Positions 9,397 through 40,272 of a DNA stretch of 64,000 bases are shown here, in pieces. Numbering within the stretch: position 1 is the stretch's first letter; each line of letters begins with the position of its first letter. The notes under the pieces were generated by a model that saw nothing but the letters and a program-made list of their open reading frames with translations, was not told the DNA's origin and did not search any database. Position numbers and translations under genes: made by a program. This DNA is from Obrimoposthia wandeli (taxonomy: Eukaryota): assembly GCA_977020255.1 (NCBI GenBank), contig CDROCS010000998.1, positions 186,001 to 250,000 on the forward strand, read 5' to 3'.

Positions 9397-9672
9397 TCAG
9401 CTCGGTTCATGATCTGATATTTGATAAAAGGGGGGTGTATATTGCCCCCATTTTTATGCCTATTTTTCACCGAGTTTTATATCTCATAAACAACAACATT
9501 AGCGTCCTTCCCTTATCAACCCTTGTTCTCTGCTTTCTAGCCTCGCTCTAAAAGTCACTTTAAGATTCATATTTATGTATTCTAAACGTTAATATGACAC
9601 TTAATGTTAATTTAATTCATGAGTAAAGCACTAAGATTATTCCACTCTCTAGCTGAACTTAGGAATCATCTA

Positions 9673-15811: not shown

Positions 15812-16038
15812 AACAAACTCCTTTCTCTTAATACTATAAGTACCGATAGCATAACGATAAGCTGCTAGCACTAGTTTGCTATATTTGACTATCGCTCATT
15901 AATCGTCAGAAAAAAATATAACTTAAGGCAAGTCATATCCGCAAGTAAAAATATTCAAGATTCTAAATACCAACAGAGACCTGAAAATCACAAGCCTCTG
16001 CTGTCTTAATGAGGAGCACTTACAATGTAGCGTGTGTT

Positions 16039-17193: not shown

Positions 17194-17249
17194 TTTTCAT
17201 TCTCCAACAACGGTGGCGCAGTTACCTATTGTAACTGCGCAACGTCTAA

Positions 17250-22760: not shown

Positions 22761-22853
22761 AGCTCGCCCCTTGGGAGCTCCTCTGGTCGCTCTGAATCAT
22801 GCATATTGAAGCGGTTTAAGTATATCTGGCTAGGGCTCAATATTGGAATTCAG

Positions 22854-24617
22854 ATGAAAAAATCTTCGGCTGCACAGGATGGTGGCCAGATCCCAGTAGC
22901 ATCATCTTTAAAACTGGCATTAACTGAGCTGGTAAAATTCTCACCCAGACGCGTCGCCGTGTTATTTATGCTAATGCTTTTTCAGGGGCTTACTGCGGGC
23001 GTTGGTTTATTGCTGTTCATCCCATTGCTCGGTGTACTGGATATCGGACTCGACAGTACAACAGGCATCAGTAAGTACTTTGTTCAAGCATTTGACTACC
23101 TGGGCATTGCGCCCAGCCTGTTGTTGATCTTAGTGAGTTATATCGTCGTCGTCTCTGCTGTCGCTTTTTGTCACTACCGAGTCTCGGTGCTTACAACCGC
23201 ACTGCAACAAAACTACATCTGCAATAAACGAAATCAGATTTATCGGGAACTGTTGGCCTGCCGCTGGCTATTTATTATTAACCGTCGTCAAGCAGAGTTA
23301 GTACATACACTCACCGTACAGGTACAACAGGCAGGCAATGCCTGTAGCCAAATGCTACAACTTCAGAGCCAGTTAACACTGGTCAGCGTTTATCTGCTAC
23401 TGGCCGTGATGCTGTCTTGGCAACTGACTGTGCTGACAATGGCTCTCGGACTACTGTTATTTGTGTTGCTCATCCCTACCAACCGACATGCGCTGGCATC
23501 CGGTAAAGCCCGGCAAAACGGATATAAGCAACTCTTCCATCAGATCAGTGAACAGCTTGATAATCTCAAAATCATTAAAAGTTTTGCCAGTGAACATCAG
23601 TTCTCAACATTGATGCTCAGCCACAGTCAGCAACTTGAACAGCAACAAACCCGGCTGGTTCAACTCAATGCCCGCACCAAACTGATTTATACCATCTCGG
23701 CGGTTGTTCTCTTCAGCCTGATTTTTTATCTATCACAACAATGGCTCGCGATCCCTGTCGCCACCTTACTCACCATGCTGTTGATATTTTCCCGGCTATT
23801 GCCGCAGATAGCGGCAATTCAAAGTAAGTTTCAGCAACTCTTACATCTCATACCAGCATTTGCAGACATCCAACAGCTCCAATATGACTGTCGCACTATG
23901 CAGGAAAATACCGAACCACAGCGCCCTGCAATAACCTTCGAAAAGCAGTTCCAACTGAAAAATATCAGTTTTCAGTACAGCTCGATGCAACCAAACGTGT
24001 TTAGCCAGTTATCGCTGAACATAAATAAAGGCGAAACCGTCGCGATTACAGGTCCTTCAGGGGTAGGAAAATCGACATTGGCAGACATCATCGCGGGCTT
24101 AATCACCCCGACTCAGGGGCAAATATACTGCGATGGAAAACCATTAACCGAACAGAATTTACTGAGCTGGCGACAATCGGTAGCTTATGTTACTCAGGAT
24201 ACATTACTGCTGAATGCCAGTATCAGAGAGAACCTGCGTTGGGTGAAACCACTGGCATCTGACCGCGAAATCTGGCTGGCACTTACTCAGGCGGCTGCCA
24301 CCGATTTTGTCCACCAGCAACCACAACAACTGGATACGGTGATCGGCGATAAAGGCATCCGTCTATCTGGCGGGGAACGACAGCGCCTGGCACTGGCTCG
24401 CGCCATCCTCAGTCAGCCACAACTGCTGATCCTCGATGAAGCCACCAGCGCGTTAGATCAGGCCAACGAAAACCACATTATTAATGTGTTACGTCAGTTA
24501 CAGGGGCAACTGACCATAGTGATCATTGCCCATAGCGAGCAAACCATCGTTCATGCGGATAAAAAGATAGTGCTATCGGATAACAATGCCAGCCCAATAG
24601 AGCTTACTTCGGCATAA
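22854..24617 (+). CDS. ABC transporter, fused permease/ATPase (lasso-peptide exporter D-like)
   Basis: 6 TM plus Walker A GPSGVGKST, LSGGERQR, ILDEATSALD. Track start 22806. Confidence 0.9.
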   Translation: MKKSSAAQDGGQIPVASSLKLALTELVKFSPRRVAVLFMLMLFQGLTAGVGLLLFIPLLGVLDIGLDSTTGISKYFVQAFDYLGIAPSLLLILVSYIVVVSAVAFCHYRVSVLTTALQQNYICNKRNQIYRELLACRWLFIINRRQAELVHTLTVQVQQAGNACSQMLQLQSQLTLVSVYLLLAVMLSWQLTVLTMALGLLLFVLLIPTNRHALASGKARQNGYKQLFHQISEQLDNLKIIKSFASEHQFSTLMLSHSQQLEQQQTRLVQLNARTKLIYTISAVVLFSLIFYLSQQWLAIPVATLLTMLLIFSRLLPQIAAIQSKFQQLLHLIPAFADIQQLQYDCRTMQENTEPQRPAITFEKQFQLKNISFQYSSMQPNVFSQLSLNINKGETVAITGPSGVGKSTLADIIAGLITPTQGQIYCDGKPLTEQNLLSWRQSVAYVTQDTLLLNASIRENLRWVKPLASDREIWLALTQAAATDFVHQQPQQLDTVIGDKGIRLSGGERQRLALARAILSQPQLLILDEATSALDQANENHIINVLRQLQGQLTIVIIAHSEQTIVHADKKIVLSDNNASPIELTSA

Positions 24618-24637
24618 TAATCCCCAAGCTACCTATT

Positions 24638-25840
24638 TCACTTTTCAGTTGACGACGATTGTTGTTGCCTGTTGGTATTGCGGCTACCATCAACCAAAAC
24701 GTGACGTCTGAACAGTGCAAGAGGTTTGGCAAACGTGTATAGCCAGCAAAACCGAGCAGGCAGCATTGGCAAGAACTGTATATCGAAAGCATTGATCCGG
24801 AACTTGGTACGAAATGCCAGTAAACCCTCCCAAACAGAATCACTGACAAACACATCCGGCAGAGTCTTTAGCTGATCAACAAAACTACGCCTGGTCAGTG
24901 TCGTGAGTTCCAGCTTATGCATCGAACGTTTAACAAAAAATCGAACCATCGCATCCTGAAACAAACCAGTCGAAAGCGAAACCGGCACCTCACAACCATA
25001 CACCCGTTGGCATAAATTTAATGCCACCAACAACGCTCGCTGCTGTTTCAACTCCCTCGCTAAGATCATTAAATCTGACCAATTAATGTCATTATTTTTT
25101 ATAATCAGCGCAATATCAACCAGCCATTTCAAACGGTGAAACTGGGTATGGGCACCATGCCAGCACAGATAAATAATATAGAAATTCAGGTTTTCATCGG
25201 TAAAGCTTTGCAGGCTTCGGTGGCTCACCGCATAGCGGGACAGCTTAGAATTTGCTACCGTAAGCCGGGAGTGTAGCTCTAATATCGTCCCGTCTTTATG
25301 ACTAAAGGTGAAATCTTTAGTCGCCAATCGCAGCCGATCAATGAAATACGGCGGAAAATCATCAAGAACGCTGGATGTAAAGCCAATGTCAGCAAGCGCA
25401 ACTCTGGCCCGCTCATAATGTTCCGGCTTAACCAGCATATCTATATCATGACTGTGCCTTAATGCCAGATCACCATAAAGCTGCTGAGCCAACTCAAACC
25501 CTTTAAAACTATAGACATCAATACCTGCATTATTAAAAGCCTGTTTAATACGTGCAGAATGCATAAACTGTTGTCGGGTTAGCTTTATCTGACGACGCTG
25601 CTTTTGCTCCAGATAGCGCTGAAATGCTTCCGACAATCCGACTAAATCCAGTGCTTTTAAATGCCGATACACACAAGGCCAGACCCGGTGTTGTTCCAGC
25701 AAGGCTTTAAAGCGGTCTTCATCAATCCCTTGCTGAAATCGCAACCGCACCTCGTGCAGTTTAACCGCATCAATGGTCGGTAAACTCAGACAACACAGCA
25801 ACTGTAATTCCTGACTGATCGTTTCCTTGGATATATCCAT
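24638..25840 (-). CDS. nucleotidyltransferase family protein (NTP_transf_5 type)
   Basis: FKG..LAQQLYG.LALRHSHDIDMLV, ILELH, HGAH..RLKWLVDI. Confidence 0.88.
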   Translation of the reverse strand: MDISKETISQELQLLCCLSLPTIDAVKLHEVRLRFQQGIDEDRFKALLEQHRVWPCVYRHLKALDLVGLSEAFQRYLEQKQRRQIKLTRQQFMHSARIKQAFNNAGIDVYSFKGFELAQQLYGDLALRHSHDIDMLVKPEHYERARVALADIGFTSSVLDDFPPYFIDRLRLATKDFTFSHKDGTILELHSRLTVANSKLSRYAVSHRSLQSFTDENLNFYIIYLCWHGAHTQFHRLKWLVDIALIIKNNDINWSDLMILARELKQQRALLVALNLCQRVYGCEVPVSLSTGLFQDAMVRFFVKRSMHKLELTTLTRRSFVDQLKTLPDVFVSDSVWEGLLAFRTKFRINAFDIQFLPMLPARFCWLYTFAKPLALFRRHVLVDGSRNTNRQQQSSSTEK

Positions 25841-25988
25841 CTAACATCCTGTTGTTGTTTTTTTTAAAAACAAAATCCCTTGCCTTACAACTGCAATTTA
25901 ACATATATGCTGCCGCTATATACCCAAGTGACCTCAAGATGCTCGTTTCAGCGAGAATTTGTTGGGCTCTATGCGGTATTACCTATTT

Positions 25989-26465
25989 TTAATGTTGAGA
26001 CTCCATTAAAAGATAAACGTCAGCGTCGCCAATTTCACAAAAACCCAAACTTTGATAAAGCTTTAAAGCCGGGTTATTTTTTTCAACGTGGATACGCACA
26101 CATTTTCCCAAACTGGCTGCTTTTGCTAAAATATCAACCAGCAGATCTCTTCCTATCCCTTTATTACGATATTGAGGAAGGAGGACAATATCGATAATCC
26201 GAATTTCATCCTCTCTCAAATCTGTGTACAACCTTCCAATTTCCTCTTTTTCCCAGAGAATAATCTCATACTTTGCATCTTCAAATTGTTGTTGATAATA
26301 CTGATGCTGCATATCAAATTGCATCTGTAAAAACTGATCAATTTGTTCTTGAGGCCATCCTGTCATTGCAAGCTCTTCCAAACGCGTGCTCGCATACACT
26401 TTTAACAGAAATGGCAGATCCTCAGGAAGAAAAATAGGTCGAAATTGAATTTCTGGGTAAAGCAT
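25989..26465 (-). CDS. GNAT N-acetyltransferase
   Basis: IIDIVLLPQYRNKGIG acetyl-CoA motif, LHV-like IHVEKNNPALKLYQSLGF. Confidence 0.93.
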   Translation of the reverse strand: MLYPEIQFRPIFLPEDLPFLLKVYASTRLEELAMTGWPQEQIDQFLQMQFDMQHQYYQQQFEDAKYEIILWEKEEIGRLYTDLREDEIRIIDIVLLPQYRNKGIGRDLLVDILAKAASLGKCVRIHVEKNNPALKLYQSLGFCEIGDADVYLLMESQH

Positions 26466-26468
26466 AAC

Positions 26469-26990
26469 TTAAGACCTCGATGGATATGTGCCGTCCAAGG
26501 CGATACAGAAGTTGACGACTGTATATGGTTGGCTATTTTCATGAGACTGGCCTTGTCCCGTACTTTGAATCGTTTCTGAACTCATGGCTGCCGGGTTGGT
26601 TGCCCCCTTCTTATAAAGGTAATTATCTGCCATCTTGGAAAGATACTGCCCCGCTGGATTCGTTTCTGTTCCCCCTGCCTTCACTGCTGTTACAGTGTGA
26701 TTGTGTGAGGGGAGGTTTTGTTGACTGAGTGGAATCACAGGATATCCATCTATCTCGGCCAGAGTGCGATAAGTTAACCCTGGGCCCCTTCTAGGGTTCA
26801 TGGGGCTTCTTCCCTGCAAATTAGGAAGGGCCATCGTCGATCTTCCATCTCCCCCATAATAGTTTGAAATAACGCTGAACAAAATTGAGTGCTGGCTAAT
26901 GGAAAGTAATGCACCATCGCAAAAAGCCCAACCACGAGGCGCATAATCACAAGTAAACATTCGAATTTCACCGACATAAGGTTCGGCCAT
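26469..26990 (-). CDS. phage tail-collar domain protein (MdpB-like), copy 3
   Basis: PYVGEIRMF..APRGWAFCDG..YGGDG..LPNLQGR; LPSHNH; C-terminal HEN.QPY.VVNFCIAL.G.YPSR. Confidence 0.9.
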   Translation of the reverse strand: MAEPYVGEIRMFTCDYAPRGWAFCDGALLSISQHSILFSVISNYYGGDGRSTMALPNLQGRSPMNPRRGPGLTYRTLAEIDGYPVIPLSQQNLPSHNHTVTAVKAGGTETNPAGQYLSKMADNYLYKKGATNPAAMSSETIQSTGQGQSHENSQPYTVVNFCIALDGTYPSRS

Positions 26991-27000
26991 AATAATCTCC

Positions 27001-27540
27001 TTAAGTGCGAGAGGGATAATTCCCTTTCAAAGCAATGATAAAATTAACGCACAAGCTGGGCATTAAATTACCGTGCGCCTCATTTCCCCCTGTATTCAAC
27101 ACCGCTTGCGACACATCGTTATCGGCTAACTCCATATTTTTAGTTGAATCACTACTTTGGGGACCATAGGCATTTACACTCGGTGTTGCCAAAGCGTGTC
27201 CCACCGGAACAGTATTATCTGCCGCTGCACTCGATGCCATTAACCCATGAGTGTGGGCGGGAATTTGATCCTTCGAGAGCGTCGCTTGTTCATCTCCAAA
27301 GCGGGCTCCGATAGGACGGGACATAAGCCCAGGGCCGGTTCCGTAATGCATAGGAAGGCGCCCACGCAAGTCGGGAAGACCAAAGGTCGTTCTTCCATCT
27401 CCTCCATATAAAGTATTGAGTAGAGAGAAAAGGGATTGATTCTGGGAAACATTCAACAACTCGCCATCACAAAATGCCCAGTTTCTCGGGGCGAAATTTC
27501 CAGCAAACATGCGAATTTCGCCTATAAAGGGTTCGGTCAT
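27001..27540 (-). CDS. phage tail-collar domain protein (MdpB-like), copy 2
   Basis: PFIGEIRMFAGNFAPRNWAFCDG..LPDLRGR; IPAHTH; HGNLMP.LCVNFII. Confidence 0.92.
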   Translation of the reverse strand: MTEPFIGEIRMFAGNFAPRNWAFCDGELLNVSQNQSLFSLLNTLYGGDGRTTFGLPDLRGRLPMHYGTGPGLMSRPIGARFGDEQATLSKDQIPAHTHGLMASSAAADNTVPVGHALATPSVNAYGPQSSDSTKNMELADNDVSQAVLNTGGNEAHGNLMPSLCVNFIIALKGNYPSRT

Positions 27541-27549
27541 AAATACTCC

Positions 27550-28089
27550 TTAATTTCTTGGGGGGAATAGCCCCTCGGTTGCGATGATAAAATTAATTAC
27601 CTGAACAGGCTGCATGTTGTTGTGAGCAAGATTGCCCCCTGTGTTACTGATCGAGTCGCCTGCCATAGCAACCGAAGGGGTTTTATTATTATACAATGGG
27701 CGCAGTTCTCCCTGTGCATTTTCCACTTGTGTAGCGAGTAGAGGGACTTTCACTGGACTGTAAGCATCAGCGTTGTCTTGTGAAGCCATTAGGTTGTGAG
27801 TATGCTCTGGAAGCTCTGTTTGGCTCAGGGTAACCTCCTCCACTCCACCCTTATCTCCCATAGAATAATGCCACTGGTTAGCAAGAGCTCCTTGATGAAC
27901 TGGGACTCTTCCTTTCATGTCGGGGAGTGCAAAGGTTGAAATACCATCTCCACCATACTTGTTGCCGATAATGGCAAACAATGTTTGGTGTTGACTGATA
28001 GGGAGGATAGCCCCATCACACTGGGCCCAGCCACGAGGAGCAAAGTTAAAGCCCACCATCGTGATTTGGCCTATATAGGGTTCAGCCAT
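27550..28089 (-). CDS. phage tail-collar domain protein (MdpB-like), copy 1
   Basis: PYIGQITMVGFNFAPRGWAQCDG..LPDMKGR; LPEHTH; HNNMQP.QVINFII. Confidence 0.92.
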   Translation of the reverse strand: MAEPYIGQITMVGFNFAPRGWAQCDGAILPISQHQTLFAIIGNKYGGDGISTFALPDMKGRVPVHQGALANQWHYSMGDKGGVEEVTLSQTELPEHTHNLMASQDNADAYSPVKVPLLATQVENAQGELRPLYNNKTPSVAMAGDSISNTGGNLAHNNMQPVQVINFIIATEGLFPPRN

Positions 28090-28330
28090 ATTATATCTCC
28101 TTTATATTGACTATTAACAATAGTCACTTTAACTAATTAGTATCTATTTTAATTTTCAACGGGAGTTATTGGCATTATCAACAATAATACGCCTTAATTA
28201 ATAATAAATATCTTAACTCCATTTATTTGTAGTCTATTTAAAATAAATTACAATAAAACTAAAAACCTCAACGCTTTTCTTGTTATATTAATTAACAAAC
28301 AATCATACCTATTGGTTTAAACTCGACTTG

Positions 28331-28361
28331 TTACAGTTAATATGACCATTTATGTGATCAG
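28331..28361. repeat. 31-bp direct repeat, copy 1 (upstream of tail-collar operon)
   Basis: TTACAGTTAATATGACCATTTATGTGATCAG; 27/31 identical to 29011-29041. Confidence 0.75.
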
Positions 28362-28502
28362 ATAACACAATTTAATTATTTCGTTATGACGCAAATGTGG
28401 TAGCAGTCACAGTATTAACTGTATTTAAAATGATTCGGCTTAATCTTTATCAACTAAACTCGATATTTGTTACGTTTATGATATCACTCCAACTCTGGTT
28501 AA

Positions 28503-28814
28503 TTAATCCATTCGCTTATAGTTAATAATTGCTTCATATTTATAATGCTGCTCGTCTTCACCCACCGGGACGATAAACAAGGAAAATTGACTTTCTTTTT
28601 CCTTACTTTCCATCGACCAGTTTCCTTGCCTTAAGCGGAAATGATTCTTATTACCATGAAATAAAAGAGAAAAACTCTCAACATTGTTACCGAGGTTTTT
28701 TTTATCCGATACTTCCACTAGTCTTAGCGGTAAGGGGGGTTGTTCCGGGTCATAGCAGACGTCAAAAACCTCATTGTGGGCACTAACAAATTTTTTGTGA
28801 TTGAATTCTTTCAT
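28503..28814 (-). CDS. small hypothetical protein resembling DUF6916 family
   Basis: L.LVEV..ESFSLLFHG..L.QG..F.LFIVPVG..Y.YEAI.N pattern, typical of the small gene found beside tail-collar/GNAT cassettes. Family name from recall, not a search. Confidence 0.65.
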   Translation of the reverse strand: MKEFNHKKFVSAHNEVFDVCYDPEQPPLPLRLVEVSDKKNLGNNVESFSLLFHGNKNHFRLRQGNWSMESKEKESQFSLFIVPVGEDEQHYKYEAIINYKRMD

Positions 28815-29010
28815 ATATCCTTCCTTATCTTTATCTCTTTCAAGCTTATTAAGCCAAAATACACAAGGCCAATTTAATTACGAGTAACACCTTAACTTTC
28901 TTTATTTTTAGACTATTTAAAGCAAGTTTCAATAAGATTGTGGGTGTTCTATGGCTGGTTTGGTTATATTAACTAAATGATAATTAGGCGGCCTAATTTA
29001 AATGATGATT

Positions 29011-29041
29011 TTGCAGTTGATATGACAATTCATGTGATCAG
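29011..29041. repeat. 31-bp direct repeat, copy 2 (upstream of DUF6916-like gene)
   Basis: TTGCAGTTGATATGACAATTCATGTGATCAG. Confidence 0.75.
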
Positions 29042-29066
29042 GCGACAATATTAAATTACGCATTTA

Positions 29067-29501
29067 TTATACCATATAGCGATCGATGACGTGATAGCAT
29101 GCGACGTCATTACCGCCAGTAAGATAAGCATCACCAAGCATCAACCAAGCATGGGCTTTATATTCGCTAGTTGTTTTGTTGACCCCGATATAAACAATGC
29201 CAGCCATTTTCCGCCTTCTCAGCATACTTTGGGCTGCCATCGCCTGCGCCAGGCATTTGCATTGCCATGGCAGGTATTTGGCAACAAGACGTACAGCCCG
29301 GCCTATCTGCTTCGCTTTCTGTGGGCACTGAACTAAGGGATCATCGTCATCCAAATTTTGCTGCCCTAGCATACGGGTTTGCACTGGGTAACGGGCAAAA
29401 AGAATAAGCAGCCGAGCTAGGGCCAACCAGCAACTTGCCTCAACGAGAATAAATCGCTGGTTGGAGCGGACGAGCTTGAAAAATAAGACTAAGTACCTCA
29501 T
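29067..29501 (-). CDS. lasso peptide leader peptidase B2 (transglutaminase-like)
   Basis: KCLAQAMA (Cys), .GV......AHAWL (His); overlaps B1 stop. Confidence 0.92.
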   Translation of the reverse strand: MRYLVLFFKLVRSNQRFILVEASCWLALARLLILFARYPVQTRMLGQQNLDDDDPLVQCPQKAKQIGRAVRLVAKYLPWQCKCLAQAMAAQSMLRRRKMAGIVYIGVNKTTSEYKAHAWLMLGDAYLTGGNDVACYHVIDRYMV

Positions 29502-29776
29502 TCGTTCAAGCTGATAAATTTTTTGGCTTGTAGTTGAGTTAAAAACGCAGCAATGTCGTTTTTACCTTGTTCGGGTGCAACGTCATACTCATCGAGTATT
29601 GTTTCGAATATATTTGACAGTTGGGATGGGTTTTCTAGCAATTGCCAAATCCGAGCACCGATGTTATCGAGTTTGAAATACTTTCCGGTTTGGGTACACA
29701 TTAACACTACCTCACCATCAAGCACGCAGCTCACTTGGTTGGGGCTACGCTCGATAATGCTTGTTTGACTGATCAT
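29498..29776 (-). CDS. PqqD-family RiPP recognition element (lasso B1)
   Basis: LDGEVVLM...GKYFKLDNIGARIWQLL..YDV..DI.AFL.QL. Confidence 0.93.
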   Translation of the reverse strand: MISQTSIIERSPNQVSCVLDGEVVLMCTQTGKYFKLDNIGARIWQLLENPSQLSNIFETILDEYDVAPEQGKNDIAAFLTQLQAKKFISLNE

Positions 29777-29794
29777 TTGGTTTCCTTACAGTAG

Positions 29795-30655
29795 TTAGTC
29801 AATAACCTGATTATGGTCATCCAAGTAGCCAAATTGTCTCATGACCACCTGGTTGTGTTCTATGAAAAGGCTGACTTGCTGATCGCTCAGTTTTTCCCGC
29901 CAATCGCCGACAACACCACGGCGGAAAAAATGTTCTGCGCGCCCCGGCTTTTCATTAAAGCCATTAGCTTGCTCTTGGGCGACTAGCTTGCTAAAGCTCG
30001 TTTTATCTATAGCGCTTTGAATTTCCTGCTCACTGGCTTTAATTCCGGCAAAATGAAGCGCCTTGCCAAAGGTGTCTATAGGGGAAGCATGCATATCTTC
30101 ATAGCGAATAACACAGCAAGGCATATTGGGTGTTTGGGTCCAGCTCTGGACGTGCCCACTCCAGTCGAGCAGCCTCTGCTGTAACTGGGAAGCTTGCCTG
30201 TTTGGATGCGTACCAAAGCAATGATCTTTGTTCATCATCTGGTGCAGGGTTTTTTCAACATTGCCATGGCCGCTATGAAAAGCAAGGGATACACAGACAT
30301 CGAGCGGGTTGCGAATGATATAGATAGCACCGAGTGTCGCTTTGTTAGAAACCAGTGGTTCCCCTTGGTCAGTGTGGGTATAAGCATCGTGAATTTTGTG
30401 AAATCGAGGTTTATCGTACTGCCTGGCAGTGTGTTCATACACTCTAGGACGAAGTCGCTCAATTTCTTTCTCGGTCAGGTCGGCAGAATCATACCCGACT
30501 GCACTCTCAAACCAGTAGCGTGAGCTGGCTATTGAATGTGACTTTGGTGCGTTAATATTCAGTTCTGACTCTTTATTATCTAACGCATGTAAAAATAACC
30601 GGAACCAAGTGTTGCCAGATTTAGGGTATGAGGCCAGCCAGATAATTTTATTCAT
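29795..30655 (-). CDS. PAPS-dependent sulfotransferase
   Basis: IWLASYPKSGNTW (5'-PSB), IRNPLDVCVS (3'-PB), RYEDM, FFRRGVVGDW. Confidence 0.93.
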   Translation of the reverse strand: MNKIIWLASYPKSGNTWFRLFLHALDNKESELNINAPKSHSIASSRYWFESAVGYDSADLTEKEIERLRPRVYEHTARQYDKPRFHKIHDAYTHTDQGEPLVSNKATLGAIYIIRNPLDVCVSLAFHSGHGNVEKTLHQMMNKDHCFGTHPNRQASQLQQRLLDWSGHVQSWTQTPNMPCCVIRYEDMHASPIDTFGKALHFAGIKASEQEIQSAIDKTSFSKLVAQEQANGFNEKPGRAEHFFRRGVVGDWREKLSDQQVSLFIEHNQVVMRQFGYLDDHNQVID

Positions 30656-31572
30656 TGCACCGCCTCAGCCGCAACACAGGTGATCATCTCATCAAGATAA
30701 AATAGATTGTTACTTGGGCGTTTTAAATCAAAGGCAGTTATTTGCTGTACCAGCGCAATGCATTGTTTGAAATGCGTAATTTCCATACCATGACCAATAA
30801 TATATTGCTTGCGGTAGCTATGTGTTTTCAGGCATTCAATGATATCAGCCCCACGAAGCCGTGTGCATTGCACGGTGTCCCCGTTATAAGTACCGAGCTG
30901 GAACAGGTGGCTCAATGGCTTTGGTTCACGGCTAAATACAGGGTGGATAGGCATTTTTCGCTTAGATAATTCGGGTCTGATCCGTAACAGTGTCTCGGGG
31001 TCTTGGTTTAGTTGTTCCAGCGCGTCATGCCATAACTTGGTTTGCGGATAACCCGGATAAACCATTGCAAGGCCGTTGTTGTCGTTAGAAAACTTAATGA
31101 CGCAGAGATCGTCTCCGAGTAATTTGTATCCCCGTTGGCTGAAAGCCGTTGCCAAAGTCGATTTCCCCTGACCGGAATGGCCAACAAGGGTAATGCAATG
31201 GTCACCAACGTCGACCACACTGCCATGTAATACCAGCATGCCACGCTGTTGTAGCAAGGCCCCTAGCGCTGAACCGAGTAAAAAAAGACGGATGGAGTCG
31301 TGATCTGCCCCTGGGGCGGAGTCAATCAGGATCTCTTTACCGTCGCGAACTAAATAACGGGCAACATCATCGACAAGTAATAAAAATTCCCCAGGCTTGA
31401 CCTGATAACGAACACCGAAGGCTTTTGGGTTATCCAGCGTATCAGGGACTGGCGCAAAACGGATATTGACATCGGCCTCGCCGCTGAATTCGCCACTGAA
31501 AAGCTCGGGACATTCGAACTCAGAATCAATATTGAGTCCAAAGCAATAATAGGAATAGTGCTTATCGGTCAT
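30652..31572 (-). CDS. HPr-kinase-like kinase (paeninodin PadeK-type)
   Basis: LHGSVV (His), GHSGQGKSTLA P-loop, LLGDDL. Confidence 0.88.
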   Translation of the reverse strand: MTDKHYSYYCFGLNIDSEFECPELFSGEFSGEADVNIRFAPVPDTLDNPKAFGVRYQVKPGEFLLLVDDVARYLVRDGKEILIDSAPGADHDSIRLFLLGSALGALLQQRGMLVLHGSVVDVGDHCITLVGHSGQGKSTLATAFSQRGYKLLGDDLCVIKFSNDNNGLAMVYPGYPQTKLWHDALEQLNQDPETLLRIRPELSKRKMPIHPVFSREPKPLSHLFQLGTYNGDTVQCTRLRGADIIECLKTHSYRKQYIIGHGMEITHFKQCIALVQQITAFDLKRPSNNLFYLDEMITCVAAEAVQ

Positions 31573-31796
31573 GATCTTTTGTTATCTGTATGATATTAAG
31601 GTTAATAAATGTAACATTGGTCGTTGGTTATGCCAATAGTTTCTATTAAACTACGTGCACTATGTTGCTTTTGTTATACGGCTAGACCATATAACAACGT
31701 TAACTGGTGGACGAATTGAAACTTCACGCTTTGGCTTGATTAGGCTGATTACCTTGCTTGGCGGGCGATTGTTGATTGACTGTTAAGGGATTATAT

Positions 31797-33743
31797 ATGA
31801 GTGGAATCGGCGGTATCGTATTACCAGCAAGGCAAAAAATTGAATTGCAAGAATTGCAGCGAATGTCCAATGCATTGCGTCCTTATGGTCCTGACCGGCA
31901 ACAGGCCTTATTACGACCTGGTGTTGGCTTTCTTCATTGCCTTATGCGCATTACTCCGGAAGATTTTTTTGAGTATCAGCCTCTGGCGTCACCTTCTGGC
32001 ATTTTGTTATGCGCAGATGCCCGTATTGATAATCGTCAGGAATTAGCGGACAAGCTGTCCATTCATGCTTCTCAGCTGAAAACCTTACCTGATAGTCAGC
32101 TTATCATTAAGGCTTACGAGCAATGGGGAGAATCATGCCCTGAGCATCTACTGGGTGATTTTGCCTTTGCGATCTGGGATCCCCGTGAACAAAAGTTGTT
32201 TATGGCCCGGGACCATTTCGGTGTTCGTTCTCTTTATTACTCCCATAAAGGCGATTTTTTTGCCTTTGCCAATGATATGAAAGCGCTATTGGCTCTGCCG
32301 CAAATCAGTGACACGCTAGATCCGCAAAAGCTGGCCGAGTTTGCCGTGTTGATGCATGGCGACACTCATGCCTGTTTCTATCAAGATATCCGTAGGCTTC
32401 CTCCTGCCCATAGCTTGACCTTGGTGAACAACCAAGTTCGGCTTCATCGTTATTACAGGCTTGAAGAAAATGTGCGCGATATTCACTTTTCTAACGATAA
32501 GGAATATGGCGAGGCCTTAAAAGAGCAACTCAACCAAGCTGTTAAGTGTCGGCTGCGCAGCGCCTATCCAATCGGCAGCGAGCTGAGCGGAGGGTTAGAT
32601 TCTACCAGTGTAGCGGGTCTGGCGGCCATTGAACTGGCGAAACAAGGCACAACATTGAATACCTTTACCGCCGTTCCGCCGGTTAGGTATCAGGGTGCAA
32701 AGCGTCGGGGGTGGGATCTTGATGAGCGCCCTTATATTCAAGCCTTTGGTGATATGCATAATAATGTTAATACTCACTTGCTAGAGGTCGATCCTGCTGG
32801 GAAAAACCTCTTTTCATTACTGGACGATACATATCGTCGTCAGGGTTTTCCCAACCGTAATGTCACCTCGACGTGGCTGAATGAGTTGGGCCATATGGCG
32901 GCGGATAAAGGGATAAGGGTAATGCTTAATGGCGGAATGGGAAATTTGACCATTAGTTGGACAGGCCAGTGCCTTTACAGTGAGCTGTTGCAACAAGGAC
33001 GCTGGTTAACTTGGCTAAAGTCGGTAAATCAGGCGAGGCAAACGAAAAATACCTCGCTCAAATCCTTACTGGCAACTTCGTTAGTACCTTTTATTCCCGA
33101 TTCTCTATGGGGCCGTTATCGCCGCCTGCGAGATGGCTATCAACAACCGTGGGTACGATATTCGCTGCTCAATCCAGAAATGGCCAAGCAACAAAATATC
33201 GACACGCGTTTCGATGAGTTAAACTGGGATCCCTATTATCGTCGGCAGGTCAAAGGCCGTGATAGCCGGATCATTCAGCTTGAAAAAAGAAACTGTTTTG
33301 ATGCCCGTGACCAAAATAGTGCTAGGCGCTCACTTGTTGGTGTCGAACGCAGAGATCCTACCCGCGATAAACGGCTGGTTGAATTTTGTTTTGGCATTGA
33401 AGAAGCTGTTTATTGTCAAGGCGGCCAACAGCGGGCATTAATTCGACAAGCAATGCAGGGGGTTGTGCCGGAGGCAATACTGCAACGTCAAACCCGCGGA
33501 ATGCAACCGCCGAGTTATTCAAATCATTTTCATGAGTCACCTTCGCTACTTTGGCAACAATTCGCGCAACTAAAACAATCTGACTCAGCGAGTCAGTATT
33601 TGGATTTACCAAGAATGGAAACAATGTTGCGTCGTGCTTTGGAGGGAAAAGCAGCAGCGTCTGAGTCGGCTATGCTGAAGATGACCCTGGAGCGAGCCTA
33701 TTCTGTTGGGGGCTTTATCTGCCACAATGAAAGTAAAAATTAG
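31797..33743 (+). CDS. lasso peptide cyclase C (asparagine-synthetase-like isopeptide synthase)
   Basis: Starts MSGIGG (Ser where AsnB has catalytic Cys); LSGGLDS ATP motif; ERRDP..DKRLVEFC. Track start 31776. Confidence 0.9.
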   Translation: MSGIGGIVLPARQKIELQELQRMSNALRPYGPDRQQALLRPGVGFLHCLMRITPEDFFEYQPLASPSGILLCADARIDNRQELADKLSIHASQLKTLPDSQLIIKAYEQWGESCPEHLLGDFAFAIWDPREQKLFMARDHFGVRSLYYSHKGDFFAFANDMKALLALPQISDTLDPQKLAEFAVLMHGDTHACFYQDIRRLPPAHSLTLVNNQVRLHRYYRLEENVRDIHFSNDKEYGEALKEQLNQAVKCRLRSAYPIGSELSGGLDSTSVAGLAAIELAKQGTTLNTFTAVPPVRYQGAKRRGWDLDERPYIQAFGDMHNNVNTHLLEVDPAGKNLFSLLDDTYRRQGFPNRNVTSTWLNELGHMAADKGIRVMLNGGMGNLTISWTGQCLYSELLQQGRWLTWLKSVNQARQTKNTSLKSLLATSLVPFIPDSLWGRYRRLRDGYQQPWVRYSLLNPEMAKQQNIDTRFDELNWDPYYRRQVKGRDSRIIQLEKRNCFDARDQNSARRSLVGVERRDPTRDKRLVEFCFGIEEAVYCQGGQQRALIRQAMQGVVPEAILQRQTRGMQPPSYSNHFHESPSLLWQQFAQLKQSDSASQYLDLPRMETMLRRALEGKAAASESAMLKMTLERAYSVGGFICHNESKN

Positions 33744-33890
33744 TAAGTAAAATAAATGGTTTGCCCTGTTGTAAATAGCGAGAATCAATCTACACAAATG
33801 CATTTATACAGGGCGAGCCAACAGCAAGAGGGTTCAAAATGTAAGTTCACCCTACTACTTAAGAGTAAACTTATTTACGGGGTCTGTTAC

Positions 33891-34013
33891 CTAGGAACTC
33901 ATTGAAGAGGAATCAGCACCTGGACCAGCATTGCTCTTTGTCTCAAGTTCCAGCATTTCTTGTAGTTCGGGCTTTATCCAAGCTTGCTTTGTCTGTTGTT
34001 GTACTTTGTCCAT
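33891..34013 (-). CDS. lasso peptide precursor A, 40 aa: MDKVQQQTKQAWIKPELQEMLELETK-SNAGPGADSSSMSS
   Basis: Hand-translated; GAGG RBS; WxxPxL leader box; Thr at -2; core Ser1 with Asp8; C-terminal Ser. Not in the ORF track. Confidence 0.9.
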   Translation of the reverse strand: MDKVQQQTKQAWIKPELQEMLELETKSNAGPGADSSSMSS

Positions 34014-34181
34014 TTTTATACCTCGTTGGTTTAGTTAATATGGTCAATAAGCCATAACAAATAATTTAAAATTAAAACATACCACTAGCTATTGTCTTGT
34101 TGCTTCTTTGTTGTGTCAATGTTGTTTTGTGGTGCTATGTCCTGCTTTTTAATAATTATTTTGCTATGATTTTCATTCTTT

Positions 34182-35192
34182 ATGACAGGATGTCGTGTTA
34201 TGCCGCTTGATACACCCAATTCTCTTCCCGTTACTGCCGTTCCCGATGCCAAAGTCTCTATACGTGATGTATTTGGCATCGACAGCGACATGCAGGTGAT
34301 GGGGTTTACCCAACCTTGTGCCGGTGTGCCTGCCAAAATTGAGGGGTATGCTTTTGATCGGGAAACGACACTGGCCGTTCTCGCGGCTTTTAGCCATAAC
34401 CGCCGGGTCATGTTGCAAGGGCTGCACGGCACAGGAAAATCATCGCATATTGAGCAAGTGGCCGCACGACTGAACTGGCCCTGCCTTCGGGTAAACCTCG
34501 ACAGCAATATCAGCCGGTTGGACTTAATCGGTCGTGATGCCATCGTAGTAGAAAACGGCCAACAAATAACCGCCTTTCAAGAAGGGATACTGCCCTGGGC
34601 GATGCAGCGCCCGACCGCATTGATTTTCGATGAATATGACGCCGGCCGCCCAGATGTGATGTTCGTCTTGCAGCGCCTGCTGGAAAACGAAGGCCAGCTA
34701 ACGCTGCTAGAACAAAATAGGGTGATCGACTCTCATCCCTATTTTCGGTTATTTGCTACCGCCAATACCATCGGACTTGGCGATACCACAGGCCTGTACC
34801 ATGGTACCCAGCAATTGAATCAGGCGCAGATGGACCGCTGGCACATTGTTAGTACCCTCAACTTTCTGCCTTTTAAGCAGGAATTAGGGATCCTCGAAAA
34901 CCAGTTATCAAACATTACGCCAGAACAACAAGCCGTATTGGGCAATATGGTGGCAATGGCACAACTAACCCGAGAAGGCTTTAAACATGGTGATATCTCT
35001 ACATTGATGTCGTTGCGTACCCTGTTGGCCTGGGCCGAGAACTATCAGATTTTTGGTGATCTGGAGCTGGCTTTTAAATTTTCCTTTCTCAATCGCTGCG
35101 ACGAAGAGGAACGGGTGATCATCGGTGAATATTACCAACGCAGTTTTGATTACCCATTGCCAGAGCCAAGCGGAGCGCTGACTTTTGCTTAA
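34182..35192 (+). CDS. cobS: CobS-like AAA+ ATPase
   Basis: GLHGTGKSSHIEQVAARLNWPCLRVNLD, DEYDAGRPDVMFV, LYHGTQQLNQAQMDRW. Confidence 0.92.
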   Translation: MTGCRVMPLDTPNSLPVTAVPDAKVSIRDVFGIDSDMQVMGFTQPCAGVPAKIEGYAFDRETTLAVLAAFSHNRRVMLQGLHGTGKSSHIEQVAARLNWPCLRVNLDSNISRLDLIGRDAIVVENGQQITAFQEGILPWAMQRPTALIFDEYDAGRPDVMFVLQRLLENEGQLTLLEQNRVIDSHPYFRLFATANTIGLGDTTGLYHGTQQLNQAQMDRWHIVSTLNFLPFKQELGILENQLSNITPEQQAVLGNMVAMAQLTREGFKHGDISTLMSLRTLLAWAENYQIFGDLELAFKFSFLNRCDEEERVIIGEYYQRSFDYPLPEPSGALTFA

Positions 35193-36828
35193 ATCAACCA
35201 AGGTTACGGCAGAAAACGAGTCAACGACCAAACAACTGGCGAGTCTTACCGCTAGCAGGCGGGCGCTGGCAGGAAGTTGCAACCTTGACAGCAACGATCT
35301 GCTAACGCGACTACTAGGATCAGCGCTACCCTTACCATCCCTGACCTTGCACCGTGCGACAGCCGATATGGCCGGATTATGGCAGCGCCATCATGATCTC
35401 TTGATTGCCCAACAGCTAAAGCAGCGTTTGGGAGATCACCAGAGCCTATTGTGGATCGAGTGGCTGCGCATTGAAGCTTTGGGGGCACGGCAGCTCAATG
35501 GATTACGGGCCAATACCGCTGTCTTATTTGATTTTTTACTGGTTCAGCAAGCAGGTGGGGATATTGGCCGCCTGCTGGAACTGTTATTACCGTTACGCCG
35601 TAGCCTTAATAACTTAACTTGCGGTCTTGTGACGGCAGATGTGAATGTGGACATTGTTTTCACTGTGAATGAAAGCGAATGCTTGAATCAACTCATCAAT
35701 GATCAATCGGCTTTTGCAGAAGCGGCTTTCATCGCGCTGAATTTTGATAGCTCAGGAGTAAGTGATAGCAATATATCTGCCATCACCCAATCGGCAGAAA
35801 ACCCCGAGCAAGATCCTTTCTCGGAAGAAGAAAATAACGAGCCACAAGCTGATCCCGATATTGAATATGATGAGCAGGCTATCGAAGCGGCCTCGCAACC
35901 TATACCTGAAATTAATCACGCGTTCTCTAGTGATTATCGGATCTTCAGCACCCATTACGATCGCCAAATTGATGCGAACGAATATGCCCAGCAGCAGGGG
36001 CTGAGCTATTCTGAAACGCAGGATGAATATCGTCAATTAGTTAGCCGACTGGCCAATCGTTTGCAACGTCGTATTCAAGCGCTACAGCGACGTCAGTGGG
36101 AGCATGATCTCGACGATGGGCGACTTGATCCCGGCCGCCTGGCACGTGTGGTTGTCTCCCCACTGTCGGCCAGACCCTATAAAAAAGAACGAGAATCGCT
36201 ATTTAAAGAAACCGTGATCACTTTGCTGGTGGATAATTCCGGCTCGATGAAAGGGGAATCGAGCCACATCGCTTATCAGAGTTGCAGTATTATCGCTCAG
36301 TCACTGGAACGCTGCGGGATCAAAGTTGAAGTATTAGGTTTTACCACCGCACAACATAATCAACCGTTACTAGACTGGCAGGCCGCAGGCAGGCCAGAAT
36401 TACCCGGGCGGTTAAATGCGCTAAGACATATTGTTTACAAAACAGCAGACTGTAAATTCCGGCGAGCTCGTGGCGGTTTATCATTGATGCTCAATGAATC
36501 GTGGTTACAGGAAAACATCGATGGTGAGGCCCTGTTATGGGCTTATCAGCGATTGCTGGCAAGGCGTGAACCGAGGCGGATCCTGCTAACAATATCAGAT
36601 GGCAAGCCAATGGATCAGCCGACTCTCCAAGAGAATGATCAGCGCATGCTTGAGCAGCACCTGCATCAAGTGATCAAGGGGATAGAACAAGACGACCGGG
36701 TAGAATTGGCGGCCATCGGCATCGGTCATGATGTTGCGCGATATTACGCTAATGCAATAACAATTTATAACACCAGAGAATTGGGAGAGGTGTTACTAAA
36801 ACAGCTGGAGCAGCTTTTTCTTCGTTAA
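35185..36828 (+). CDS. cobT: CobT-like VWA-domain protein
   Basis: Acidic linker; G.LDPGRLAR, LLVDNSGSM (MIDAS), VEVLGFTT, ENIDGEAL.WA, ISDGKPMD, AIGIGHDV.RYY. Confidence 0.88.
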   Translation: MLKSTKVTAENESTTKQLASLTASRRALAGSCNLDSNDLLTRLLGSALPLPSLTLHRATADMAGLWQRHHDLLIAQQLKQRLGDHQSLLWIEWLRIEALGARQLNGLRANTAVLFDFLLVQQAGGDIGRLLELLLPLRRSLNNLTCGLVTADVNVDIVFTVNESECLNQLINDQSAFAEAAFIALNFDSSGVSDSNISAITQSAENPEQDPFSEEENNEPQADPDIEYDEQAIEAASQPIPEINHAFSSDYRIFSTHYDRQIDANEYAQQQGLSYSETQDEYRQLVSRLANRLQRRIQALQRRQWEHDLDDGRLDPGRLARVVVSPLSARPYKKERESLFKETVITLLVDNSGSMKGESSHIAYQSCSIIAQSLERCGIKVEVLGFTTAQHNQPLLDWQAAGRPELPGRLNALRHIVYKTADCKFRRARGGLSLMLNESWLQENIDGEALLWAYQRLLARREPRRILLTISDGKPMDQPTLQENDQRMLEQHLHQVIKGIEQDDRVELAAIGIGHDVARYYANAITIYNTRELGEVLLKQLEQLFLR

Positions 36829-36854
36829 CTGAGGGCTTTGTTGCAATAATAACG

Positions 36855-40170: not shown

Positions 40171-40216
40171 TAAATACCACCTTTATCTTTATTATCAGAA
40201 GGCTCAGTTAGAACAC

Positions 40217-40250
40217 AAAAAGGCAACGCTCTTATCACGTGCGTTGCCTT
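40217..40250 (-). terminator. hairpin/possible partial terminator between sulfatase and maturase
   Basis: AAGGCAACGC-11nt-GCGTTGCCTT with U-tract on minus strand. Confidence 0.55.
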
Positions 40251-40272
40251 ATTTTACGTCTTAGTAGACTCG

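Follow-up and report, generated by a model that had tools for sequence, protein, structure and literature searches.

Results

Gene content of the island

The window (the whole stretch of DNA analysed, 64,000 nucleotides) contains a complete set of lasso-peptide genes, namely precursor A, B1, B2, C and D, together with genes for a kinase, a sulfotransferase and a nucleotidyltransferase (Table 1). All are present and intact, in the orientations given in the preliminary description of the locus. The gene coordinates likewise agree with its placement of DUF6916, three collar genes and a GNAT, all in the same direction, between B2 and the nucleotidyltransferase, and with a cobS gene that diverges from the precursor. 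The spacer common to precursor and cobS measures 168 bp and holds the promoter-like site. Only the left boundary needed adjustment: the region was correctly recognised, and position 22854, taken as its start, falls inside the D reading frame, which begins at 22806.

Table 1. Genes and sequence features of the island, in window coordinates.
Feature	Position	Strand	Basis
D, ABC exporter (permease and ATPase)	22806..24617	+	ABC_membrane + ABC_tran
NTP_transf_5 nucleotidyltransferase	24638..25840	-	PF14907 E=9e-44
GNAT acetyltransferase, last gene of collar cassette	25989..26465	-	Acetyltransf_1/7/10
Collar paralogue 3, 173 aa	26469..26990	-	PF07484 E=4e-24
Collar paralogue 2, 179 aa	27001..27540	-	PF07484 E=5e-28
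Collar paralogue 1, 179 aa	27550..28089	-	PF07484 E=6e-26
CRP-like palindrome, in DUF6916-Col1 spacer	28396..28411		one mismatch to TGTGA-N6-TCACA
DUF6916 small beta-barrel protein	28503..28814	-	PF21880 E=5e-18
B2 leader peptidase	29067..29501	-	Transglut_core3; NF033537 73.8 bits, above cut-off 33
B1 leader-binding protein (RRE, PqqD-like)	29498..29776	-	PqqD E=7e-18
PAPS-type sulfotransferase	29795..30655	-	Sulfotransfer_1 E=2e-26
HPrK-like lasso-peptide kinase	30652..31572	-	Hpr_kinase_C P-loop region 32.1 bits, slightly below cut-off 33.3
C lasso cyclase (Asn-synthetase-like)	31776..33743	+	GATase_7 + Asn_synthase
Precursor peptide A, 40 aa	33891..34013	-	core SNAGPGADSSSMSS
Promoter-like site reading into precursor	34091..34119	-	TTGACA-17-GACAAT, 10/12 matches; consensus match only
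CobS-like AAA+ (AAA_5) ATPase	34182..35192	+	CobS_N + AAA_5
CobT-like VWA protein, 547 aa	35185..36828	+	CobT_C E=2e-63
AraC-family regulator at island edge, membership uncertain	36855..37643	-	HTH_18 + AraC_binding

Every lasso gene received Pfam and NCBIfam assignments and its reading frame is unbroken; B1 (72.6 bits to NF033536, model cut-off 80) and C (436 bits to NF033535, cut-off 525) score below their models' thresholds. Domain assignment found no peptidase domain in the D exporter, which is just 45% identical to D of P. kasasachensis, a gene placed elsewhere in its cluster. The precursor combines a W..P..L leader and Thr at -2 with a 14-residue, Ser/Gly-rich core carrying Asp8 and a C-terminal Ser. 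An identical copy lies on an independent metagenome contig (L178), and orthologues in four relatives (L001, L165, L166 and BD1-7) share the conserved leader and have very different cores. Because the core contains few bulky residues, a threaded lasso is not assured.

Tailoring enzymes

The HPrK-like kinase has 1387 homologues; a search of 185,579 species genomes located it in only 303 stretches, and lasso genes flank it in most of 80 genome loci. Thr(-2), Asp8 and the C-terminal Ser of the window precursor fit the known substrate rule of the kinase (PMC8498205). Of 83 kinase loci, 64 encode a sulfotransferase, whose gene immediately follows that of the kinase in all loci mapped, and the closest solved relatives of the window enzyme are the glycopeptide-antibiotic sulfotransferases Teg12, Teg14 and StaL. 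By analogy with pseudomycoidin PsmN (PMC8498205), the NTP_transf_5 protein, whose family occurs in 33 of the kinase loci, is a candidate phosphate-glycosylating tailoring enzyme.

The collar cassette

Collar paralogue 3 matches phage tail protein phrog_9116 over its full length, and paralogue 2 has PDB sequence matches to a long tail fibre and to gp12, the short tail fibre of T4. Genes for a virion or tail were not found near the cassette, and relatives of the collars number only 11 in 2.9 million viral contigs, whereas metagenome contigs yielded at least 592. Two motifs, HxH and HxN, are invariant, and each paralogue has separate orthologues in other loci, giving three paralogue clades. These clades and motifs, the gp12 similarity and the 1:1:1 precedent of virophage DSLV2 (PMC12724248) make it probable that the collars assemble into a heterotrimeric binding module stabilised by metal. 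The Col2 monomer model is poor outside the collar domain (C-terminal half), and no residue was found that separates lasso-linked from free collars. DUF6916 (AF2 pLDDT 88), whose fold matches, to VgrG/gpD/tail-tube-like barrels, are all weak, accompanies collars in lasso-linked and free cassettes alike, and occurs without collars upstream of the lasso kinase in L040.

The DUF6916-Col1 spacer is 413 bp long and AT-rich, and its CRP-like block is also conserved where L001 and L165 have the orthologous spacer; the count of CRP-like sites within the window is no higher than chance. Judged by its sequence, the spacer may be a separate regulated promoter region of the collar genes.

The GNAT is a member of this cassette and not a lasso tailoring enzyme. 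That it (perhaps with the collars) modifies the peptide itself, as the albusnodin acetyltransferase does, would accord with its co-directional position beside the lasso genes and with the existence of acetylated lasso peptides (PMC8498205). The cores of the window precursor and its relatives contain no Lys, however, the N-terminal amine would be consumed in the ring, and the gene tracks collar triplets whether lasso-linked or free-standing while being absent from single-collar and collar-less clusters, which makes this reading very improbable.

No signal peptides were found in the collar proteins and no export route is evident, so the earlier suggestion of a secreted trimeric fibre-tip protein is not supported. 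The same observation would suit a cytoplasmic immunity or chaperone function, in which a collar heterotrimer with DUF6916 and GNAT sequestered or escorted the anionic peptide before export; the cassette is embedded in the same direction as the biosynthetic genes, and in single-collar clusters the collar gene lies directly upstream of the precursor. We nevertheless consider this function unlikely, given that collars are missing from most kinase-type clusters, that close cassettes exist without lasso genes and often near adhesin genes, and that the peptide class has no known antibacterial target (PMC8498205).

The CobS/CobT-like pair

Family membership of the second module is clear (CobS_N, AAA_5 and CobT_C; E=1.5e-88 to solved CobT), and a B12-binding radical SAM enzyme is encoded in the lasso cluster of Desulfobacter latus. 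Both facts would agree with an ordinary aerobic cobaltochelatase motor or cobalamin-related helper that is a mere neighbour of the lasso genes, yet several observations render this improbable. Both proteins fall under their NCBIfam equivalog cut-offs (CobS-like, 467.8 bits to TIGR01650, cut-off 558.6; CobT-like, 374 bits to TIGR01651, cut-off 759). The CobT-like protein has 547 residues against the canonical 600-630 and only its residues 202-545 can be aligned to solved CobT, which leaves the N-terminal ~200 residues unaligned. CobN and cobalamin genes were not found within the 64 kb window. The nearest relatives are all lasso-linked, and beyond them identity falls to alphaproteobacterial CobT; the lasso-linked CobTs form one group (support 100/99), on long branches and with alphaproteobacterial comparators only. 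In the gammaproteobacterium BD1-7 the pair, with a CobS copy 77% identical to that of the window, is inserted between C and the kinase, and in D. latus, from a strict anaerobe lineage, it adjoins the lasso cluster.

CobST is linked to lasso genes in only two independent lineages, and a lasso-gene neighbourhood is seen in three; no CobST is in view in the P. kasasachensis-type arrangement. Among Photobacterium relatives the pair travels along with the island, and the order C-A-CobS-CobT is kept in the window, L166 and L178, with different right-hand flanks in all three. In L166 and L178, CobT is followed by short remnants of the AraC C-terminus, and nucleotide homology ends at ~36873. We regard the pair as a probable AAA+/VWA remodeller that operates independently of CobN.

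Co-occurrence of the modules with lasso genes

Of 43 judgeable kinase-anchored loci, 12 (from Vibrionaceae, Desulfobacterota, Verrucomicrobiota and Nitrospirota) have collar genes among or directly beside the lasso genes, and the other 31 have no collars. Conversely, when the closest relatives of the collars served as anchors, 4 of the 26 long loci contained lasso genes and 22 had none within reach. Loci combining the two, with varied gene orders, come from P. kasasachensis, Syntrophobacter, Desulfobacterales, Syntrophorhabdaceae, Verrucomicrobiota/Opitutaceae, Nitrospirota and Geobacteraceae; in L058 a collar sits between C and the precursor, and in L013, L045 and L054 between C/precursor and nothing else. 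On the collar tree, lasso-linked collars group within each paralogue clade, with 10 label changes against 33 when labels are shuffled (none of 500 shuffles was as low as 10). The kinases of collar-bearing loci are scattered over their tree, implying at least five gains or losses.

Identical combinations thus recur in unrelated genomes, which places the arrangement beyond chance, and the chance mosaic raised in the preliminary description is not borne out, because both modules are found with lasso genes elsewhere, across phyla. A mosaic in which cobST and the collar cassette are passengers with no relation to the lasso genes, brought together in a variable island by shared mobility or insertion hot-spots, would account for a self-contained and usually free-standing cassette with a possible promoter region of its own, for a G+C content above that of the flanks, for different flanks in relatives and for module orders that vary among Photobacterium species. 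It is hard to reconcile with a recurrence that spans four or more phyla and includes collars wedged among lasso genes, with reciprocal enrichment far beyond plausible background, with a separate lasso-linked collar lineage and with CobST inside the BD1-7 cluster, and we judge it distinctly unlikely.

Being self-contained and in most cases found on its own, the cassette counts as an optional accessory and not an obligate part; neither it nor the lasso cluster needs the other. The proposal of one functional unit survives the co-occurrence test against a chance mosaic with this qualification. Of the functions suggested for that unit, a surface or adhesion device receives an indirect hint from the giant adhesin genes often found beside free-standing cassettes and is otherwise unsupported, and nothing speaks for an anti-predator device. 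We found no publication in the searchable literature linking the collar cassette or CobS/CobT with lasso peptides, in keeping with the earlier statement that neither is known to have a characterised role in RiPP biology.

Discussion

Our favoured explanation, which we hold to be reasonably probable, is a horizontally mobile kinase-type (paeninodin-like) lasso cluster with two optional accessory modules kept adjacent by selection. As these modules recur beside the same lasso-cluster type in distant bacteria, a working partnership with the lasso peptide is probable.

The host would be a Photobacterium close to P. frigidiphilum. Following established knowledge of the family, B1 would bind the conserved leader, the kinase would phosphorylate the linear precursor at its C-terminal Ser, and the sulfotransferase and NTP_transf_5 protein may add further anionic or glycosyl groups. 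B2 is predicted to cleave after Thr(-2)-Lys(-1), and C to join Ser1 to Asp8, using up the N-terminal amine in the ring; D would then export a Ser-rich, strongly anionic product of 14 residues. The first module comprises DUF6916, the three collars and the GNAT. Assembled 1:1:1, the collars could form a heterotrimer resembling the T4 gp12/gp37 tip, held together by a metal on its axis at the invariant HxH, acting as a binder of a surface glycan or anionic ligand and not as an enzyme. This module may share an extracellular or surface process with the peptide, and possibly binds the modified peptide. The client of the CobST motor would be a protein or peptide of the lasso system, its task being other than cobalt insertion.

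Several known systems resemble parts of this locus. Clusters of the paeninodin/pseudomycoidin type share the A, B1, B2, C, D and kinase genes and have Ser as the last precursor residue, and nucleotidyltransferase and sulfotransferase genes have already been noted in them (PMC8498205). The window differs in its gammaproteobacterial host, its very short core, the kinase-sulfotransferase pair as conserved nucleus, and two additions, a CobS/CobT pair and a collar cassette embedded among the lasso genes. The AAA_5 ATPase adjoining a VWA partner reproduces the domain architecture of aerobic cobaltochelatase CobST (class I chelatase, AAA+/VWA), an ATP-driven motor on a client subunit (bioRxiv 10.64898/2026.10.09.757910), whereas the window pair has no CobN in view, sub-threshold scores and a CobT that is shorter and diverges in its N-terminal region. 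Virophage DSLV2 and T4 tips offer a parallel for the collars: three consecutive, co-oriented collar-domain genes of ~175 aa with HxH and gp12 similarity, the three consecutive PF07484 proteins of DSLV2 forming a 1:1:1 heterotrimer that binds LPS (PMC12724248). The window collars, by contrast, are cellular and stand with GNAT and DUF6916. Finally, free-standing 'microcystin-dependent protein' (COG4675) triplets on many metagenome contigs have the same three collars, GNAT and DUF6916 at 47-60% identity; these copies are without lasso genes and often near giant cadherin/Big_9, HYR, RTX or autotransporter proteins, whereas the window cassette belongs to a lasso-linked sub-lineage.

Results

A kinase-type lasso cluster with collar and CobS/CobT-like genes

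ORF listing combined with Pfam and NCBIfam scans recovered every gene named in the preliminary description of the window, including the lasso set of precursor (A), PqqD-like RRE (B1), leader peptidase (B2), cyclase (C) and ABC exporter (D), with the accompanying kinase, sulfotransferase and NTP_transf_5 nucleotidyltransferase. A co-directional minus-strand row bears out the claim that DUF6916 (PF21880), three PF07484 Collar paralogues (Col1 to Col3) and a GNAT gene lie between B2 and NTP_transf_5, and the plus-strand cobS/cobT pair does diverge from the minus-strand precursor. Taken as a whole, the description was correct. Within the row the lasso genes overlap or lie 18 bp apart and the collar and GNAT genes 3-10 bp apart, with larger spacers at B2-DUF6916 (252 bp), DUF6916-Col1 (413 bp) and GNAT-NTP_transf_5 (148 bp). 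The 168-bp spacer common to the precursor and cobS carries a strong promoter-like site directed into the precursor.

Features of the lasso island and its surroundings in the window
Feature	Position	Strand
Sole N run	14515-14680	
SBF_like ORF, 170 aa	22288-22800	-
D (exporter)	22806-24617	+
NTP_transf_5	24638-25840	-
GNAT		-
Three Collar paralogues		-
CRP-like palindrome, DUF6916-Col1 spacer	28396-28411	
DUF6916		-
B2		-
B1		-
Sulfotransferase		-
Kinase	30652-31572	-
C (cyclase)	31776-33743	+
Precursor, 40-codon ORF	33891-34013	-
CobS-like/CobT-like pair, ORFs overlapping	34182-36828	+
AraC-family regulator	36855-37643	-
Radical SAM enzyme and adjoining sulfatase	38938-42021	-
ORF, 988 aa	58925-61891	-

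The B protein is split, with B1 matching PqqD (E=7e-18) and B2 matching NF033537 at 73.8 bits (cut-off 33). C combines GATase_7 and Asn_synthase domains, and its top NCBIfam match is the lasso cyclase model NF033535, an exception model whose cut-off of 525 is not reached at 436 bits. The kinase matches the P-loop region of Hpr_kinase_C at 32.1 bits, marginally below the Pfam cut-off of 33.3; a sequence search of the PDB found no lasso kinase structure. The precursor has a W..P..L leader, Thr at -2 and the core SNAGPGADSSSMSS, with Asp8 and the C-terminal Ser that lasso kinases require (review PMC8498205). Orthologous precursors retain Thr(-2), a core Asp (position 8 or 9, within the 7-9 range of Asp or Glu expected of this class) and the terminal Ser. 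Judged by its precursor, split B protein, cyclase and HPrK-related kinase sequences, this is a kinase-type (paeninodin-like) lasso peptide cluster, and kinase, nucleotidyltransferase and sulfotransferase genes are already known from such clusters (PMC8498205).

The closest proteins to the window genes come from Photobacterium. CobT shares 92% identity with a protein from a P. frigidiphilum MAG, and the kinase is 74% identical to that of P. kasasachensis and 55% to that of a gammaproteobacterium of the BD1-7 clade. A JGI metagenome contig (L178) matches window positions 29506-36873 at 95% identity and encodes exactly the same precursor. The G+C fraction of the island (0.45-0.48) exceeds that of its flanks (about 0.40-0.42), and the only N run in the window lies far from it. 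A search for direct or inverted repeats flanking the island found none, and there were no Rfam matches between 20 and 40 kb.

Several further features were observed at the island borders and beyond. D and NTP_transf_5 (window 22806-25840 versus L001:710-3585) share 45% and 30% identity with their P. kasasachensis counterparts and occupy the opposite end of the cluster there, whereas the other cluster genes are 56-79% identical; this low identity and altered position suggest non-orthologous replacement of the export/nucleotidyltransferase module. The 170-aa SBF_like ORF matches only the first ~90 of 313 positions of the transporter model; it probably represents a truncated leftover at the island's left edge. 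Beside cobT stands an intact AraC-family regulator, of which only short C-terminal remnants follow cobT in the P. frigidiphilum MAG (L166:5229-5362) and in L178 (2021-2212); it may be a present or former regulator of the island. An anaerobic sulfatase-maturing radical SAM enzyme that scores above the TIGR03942 cut-off adjoins a sulfatase roughly 2 kb outside the island; for the 988-aa ORF further away, Pfam returned no domain with E of 1e-5 or less.

The collar cassette recurs beside lasso clusters

The preliminary description proposed looking for the collar, GNAT and DUF6916 genes beside lasso genes elsewhere, and such co-occurrence was found. In a forward test, 35 kinase homologues were aligned and one genome per species was scanned, giving 303 confirmed relatives among 185,579 species genomes, a lower bound from a single search pattern. 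The best 80 of the 303 were taken with ±10 kb and searched by tblastn with the window proteins and by iterated HMMs. B1, B2, C and the sulfotransferase stand alongside the kinase in most of the 80 loci, and the conserved nucleus of the family comprises kinase and sulfotransferase plus B1, B2 and C; the sulfotransferase is present in 64 of 83 kinase loci and follows the kinase immediately in every mapped locus. Collars were present in 12 of the 43 kinase loci with at least 7 kb on each side of the kinase.

These collars take two forms. One, a triplet accompanied by GNAT and in some cases by DUF6916, occurs in P. kasasachensis (two triplets), Syntrophobacter (L013), a verrucomicrobial MAG (L045), Desulfobacterales (L054), Opitutaceae (L060) and Syntrophorhabdaceae (L070, two triplets); the other, a single collar gene of ~205 aa, lies between C and the precursor or kinase in L027, L036, L038, L057 and L058. 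Despite varied gene order, the collars adjoin lasso genes: they begin 68 bp past C in L013, follow C and an intervening precursor in L045, and end 114 bp ahead of the precursor in L058. The P. kasasachensis triplets are arranged in tandem with GNAT in between (L001:9860-13728), and six collar genes are also seen in L070 and in a metagenome locus, L155. Additionally, in the Desulfobacterota-type clusters (L058:6840-7703, also L027, L038 and L057) C and the single collar gene are separated by a 287-aa protein that has no Pfam domain, and a partial relative of it is present beyond GNAT in L054; this protein may be one more accessory of lasso clusters that bear collars.

In the reverse test, metagenome contigs were scanned with a Col2-type alignment and the 80 closest relatives (47-60% identity) were examined. 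Nearly all have the same set of three collars, GNAT and DUF6916, which identifies the cassette as a self-contained module. Kinase, sulfotransferase, B1 and C were found in four of the 26 collar loci of at least 9.5 kb (L111, L145, L151 and L155). Kinase-type lasso clusters being rare, we estimate that this 15% exceeds chance by orders of magnitude; the sample is skewed towards relatives of the lasso-linked collar, so the figure does not describe PF07484 triplets at large. Free-standing cassettes share no enzymatic neighbour, and often have giant surface proteins as immediate neighbours: cadherin-like/Big_9 proteins of 1100-1950 aa (L085, L108, L114), a 1900-aa autotransporter (L132), and HYR, RTX, collagen-like and Big_12 proteins.

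The three paralogues separate into clades in a tree built from 209 collar proteins; each of these clades has orthologues in many loci, and the single-collar proteins occupy a supported clade of their own. Within each clade the lasso-linked collars cluster, with 10 label changes against about 33 when labels were shuffled (0 of 500 shuffles as low); no residues separating lasso-linked from free collars were found. In the kinase tree, collar-bearing clusters are scattered, with at least five changes forced by well-supported branches and seven in the best tree. The two trees also conflict in some pairings: the L054 and L013 collars are sisters while their kinases lie far apart, and the L070 collars group with verrucomicrobial ones. 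From this clustering, scattering and conflict we infer that a single collar lineage was attached to, or dropped from, various lasso cluster lineages on repeated occasions. This pattern has the look of an optional functional accessory, unlike random juxtaposition.

Nature of the collar, DUF6916 and GNAT proteins

Along their whole length the collar proteins match phage tail proteins (phrog_9116), and at the N-terminus they match the collar/receptor-binding region of T4 gp12. An alignment of 17 sequences shows no variation in the HxH and HxN motifs; in the gp12 and gp37 trimers, HxH coordinates an axial metal. In a virophage, three consecutive PF07484 proteins have been shown to assemble 1:1:1 into a heterotrimeric fibre with LPS-binding activity (PMC12724248). 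By analogy with this precedent, the three consecutive, co-oriented collar genes of the window, with their conserved HxH and paralogue clades kept across loci, suggest a similar 1:1:1 assembly. An AF2 monomer of Col2 is confident for the collar domain only, with low confidence past residue ~66 (pLDDT 59.7 overall, below 50 at residues 94-163).

A prophage or tailocin would surround the collars with further phage genes for tail, baseplate, capsid or lysis functions, and the neighbours are instead lasso genes, GNAT and DUF6916; this collar subfamily is also rare on viral contigs (11 loci). Action of the kinase on the collar C-termini is rejected, since these do not consistently end in Ser. An albusnodin-type tailoring role for GNAT is likewise rejected, since GNAT accompanies collar triplets, not lasso genes, and no Lys acceptor occurs in the core peptides of the window and its relatives. 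No signal peptides were found in the cassette proteins. PADLOC defence models gave no match for the collars, GNAT, DUF6916, CobT or NTP_transf_5, and only weak P-loop matches to IetA for CobS.

DUF6916 is modelled as a small beta-barrel (pLDDT 88). Fold searches of the PDB and BFVD returned no significant match; the weak recurrent ones, mostly to VgrG/gpD/tail-tube-type barrels (E >= 0.018), at most hint at a tail ancestry. A profile search retrieved 7472 cluster representatives at 50% identity, and a word-indexed search two proteins; three look-ups of random representatives led mostly to contigs below 4 kb, L084 alone being informative. In L040, a locus with two lasso clusters, DUF6916 (9660-9956) stands 39 bp upstream of a lasso kinase without any collar gene. 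The palindrome in the DUF6916-Col1 spacer has one mismatch to TGTGA-N6-TCACA and lies within a block that P. kasasachensis and L165 conserve in their orthologous AT-rich spacers. The collar genes may have a cAMP-CRP-dependent promoter of their own.

CobS/CobT-like pairs beside lasso clusters

CobS and CobT of the window are members of the cobaltochelatase motor family. Both fall under the equivalog thresholds (CobS 467.8 bits against 558.6 for TIGR01650; CobT 374 against 759 for TIGR01651), and CobT is about 60-80 residues shorter than canonical, aligning to the solved CobT over residues 202-545 only. No CobN or cobalamin pathway genes were found in the 64-kb window or in the BD1-7, Desulfobacter latus, L166 and L178 loci.

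Co-occurrence with lasso genes, also proposed as a check, was found in BD1-7 genomes, where CobST lies between C and the kinase, and in D. latus, where it follows the lasso cluster past reverse-transcriptase and HNH-endonuclease genes that are probably a mobile-element remnant. The D. latus cluster (L080:10863-13094 and 15770-17659) additionally encodes a B12-binding radical SAM enzyme, and its reverse-transcriptase and RRXRR/HNH genes stand between C and cobT. In P. kasasachensis-type clusters no cobST was present within the sequence in view. The window, L166 and L178 share the order C-precursor-CobS-CobT with differing flanking genes, and nucleotide homology among the three stops about 45 bp past cobT. 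Uncharacterised proteins beside CobT in D. latus, in BD1-7 and beside the window island showed no similarity to one another.

The four lasso-linked CobTs fall on the same side of a 100/99 branch, with long branches of their own and a one-sided comparator set; the next relatives outside Photobacterium and BD1-7 are ordinary alphaproteobacterial proteins. Recent phage origin of cobS is rejected, phage CobS being at most 37% identical. A functional link between CobST and the lasso cluster is, on balance, the likelier case. Canonical CobST is an ATP-driven motor that presents a VWA domain to its client (bioRxiv 10.64898/2026.10.09.757910); from this mechanism, the most economical inference is that the window pair would be a remodeller with a non-CobN client.

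Core peptides differ between near-identical islands

Over a stretch taking in cobT, cobS and the precursor's leader half, the window and L166 are 92.7% identical, against 73% over C. Identity breaks sharply inside the precursor gene (window 33891-33940 versus L166:2193-2245), and the cores are unrelated (SNAGPGADSSSMSS in the window, FNTNTNTDANSNSSS in the P. frigidiphilum MAG); the break, the lower identity of C and the unrelated cores together suggest recombinational replacement of core and cyclase. Leaders are conserved across five relatives, and their cores have in common only a length of 14-15, Asp8 or Asp9, richness in Ser/Thr/Asn/Gly and the terminal Ser. Such rapid core replacement fits a molecule engaged in specific recognition. 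The tail of the window core has few bulky plug residues, so the modifications may be important for any lasso plug.

Discussion

The lasso cluster itself belongs to an already known type; the new part is the recurrence beside lasso clusters of the collar cassette, for which the evidence is strong, and of the CobS/CobT pair, for which it is moderate. In the literature searched, no paper joined 'lasso peptide' with 'tail collar', DUF6916 was not mentioned, and pairing 'lasso peptide' with CobS or 'phage tail' returned irrelevant co-mentions only.

On the best-supported reading, the exported anionic peptide shares a process with two partners, a heterotrimeric binding module and an AAA+/VWA remodeller. 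A more specific scheme can be proposed, in which the collar heterotrimer would be a receptor or carrier derived from a phage fibre tip, recognising the phospho/sulfo/glycosyl tail of the lasso peptide. Together, peptide and fibre would make up a recognition system of two components, with attachment to surfaces, discrimination of kin or strains, or delivery among its conceivable tasks, while the motor would load, unload or remodel the peptide-collar complex. The core swap between near-identical islands would represent the peptide half of a co-diversifying pair. That all of this holds jointly (a collar heterotrimer dedicated to the modified lasso peptide, a CobS/CobT-like motor acting on the complex and a co-diversifying peptide) we consider unlikely.

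We know of no activity assigned to phosphorylated (paeninodin-type) lasso peptides as a class. About one in four of the nearest kinase-type clusters has a binding module resembling a tail-fibre tip, and some have an AAA+/VWA motor. These are the first concrete candidate protein partners for such peptides, and they hint at a binding or surface role over a classical antibiotic one. Furthermore, the association offers a way into the function of two orphan families that are very common, the COG4675 'microcystin-dependent' collar triplets and DUF6916, and a CobN-independent context for CobS/CobT-like motors.

Compared with known systems, the window pair differs from the aerobic cobaltochelatase CobNST in its sub-equivalog scores and in the absence of CobN from the loci examined. 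For the collar genes the comparison is with a DSLV2-like or gp12-like fibre tip, against which the window presents three consecutive, co-oriented PF07484 genes with the HxH motif.
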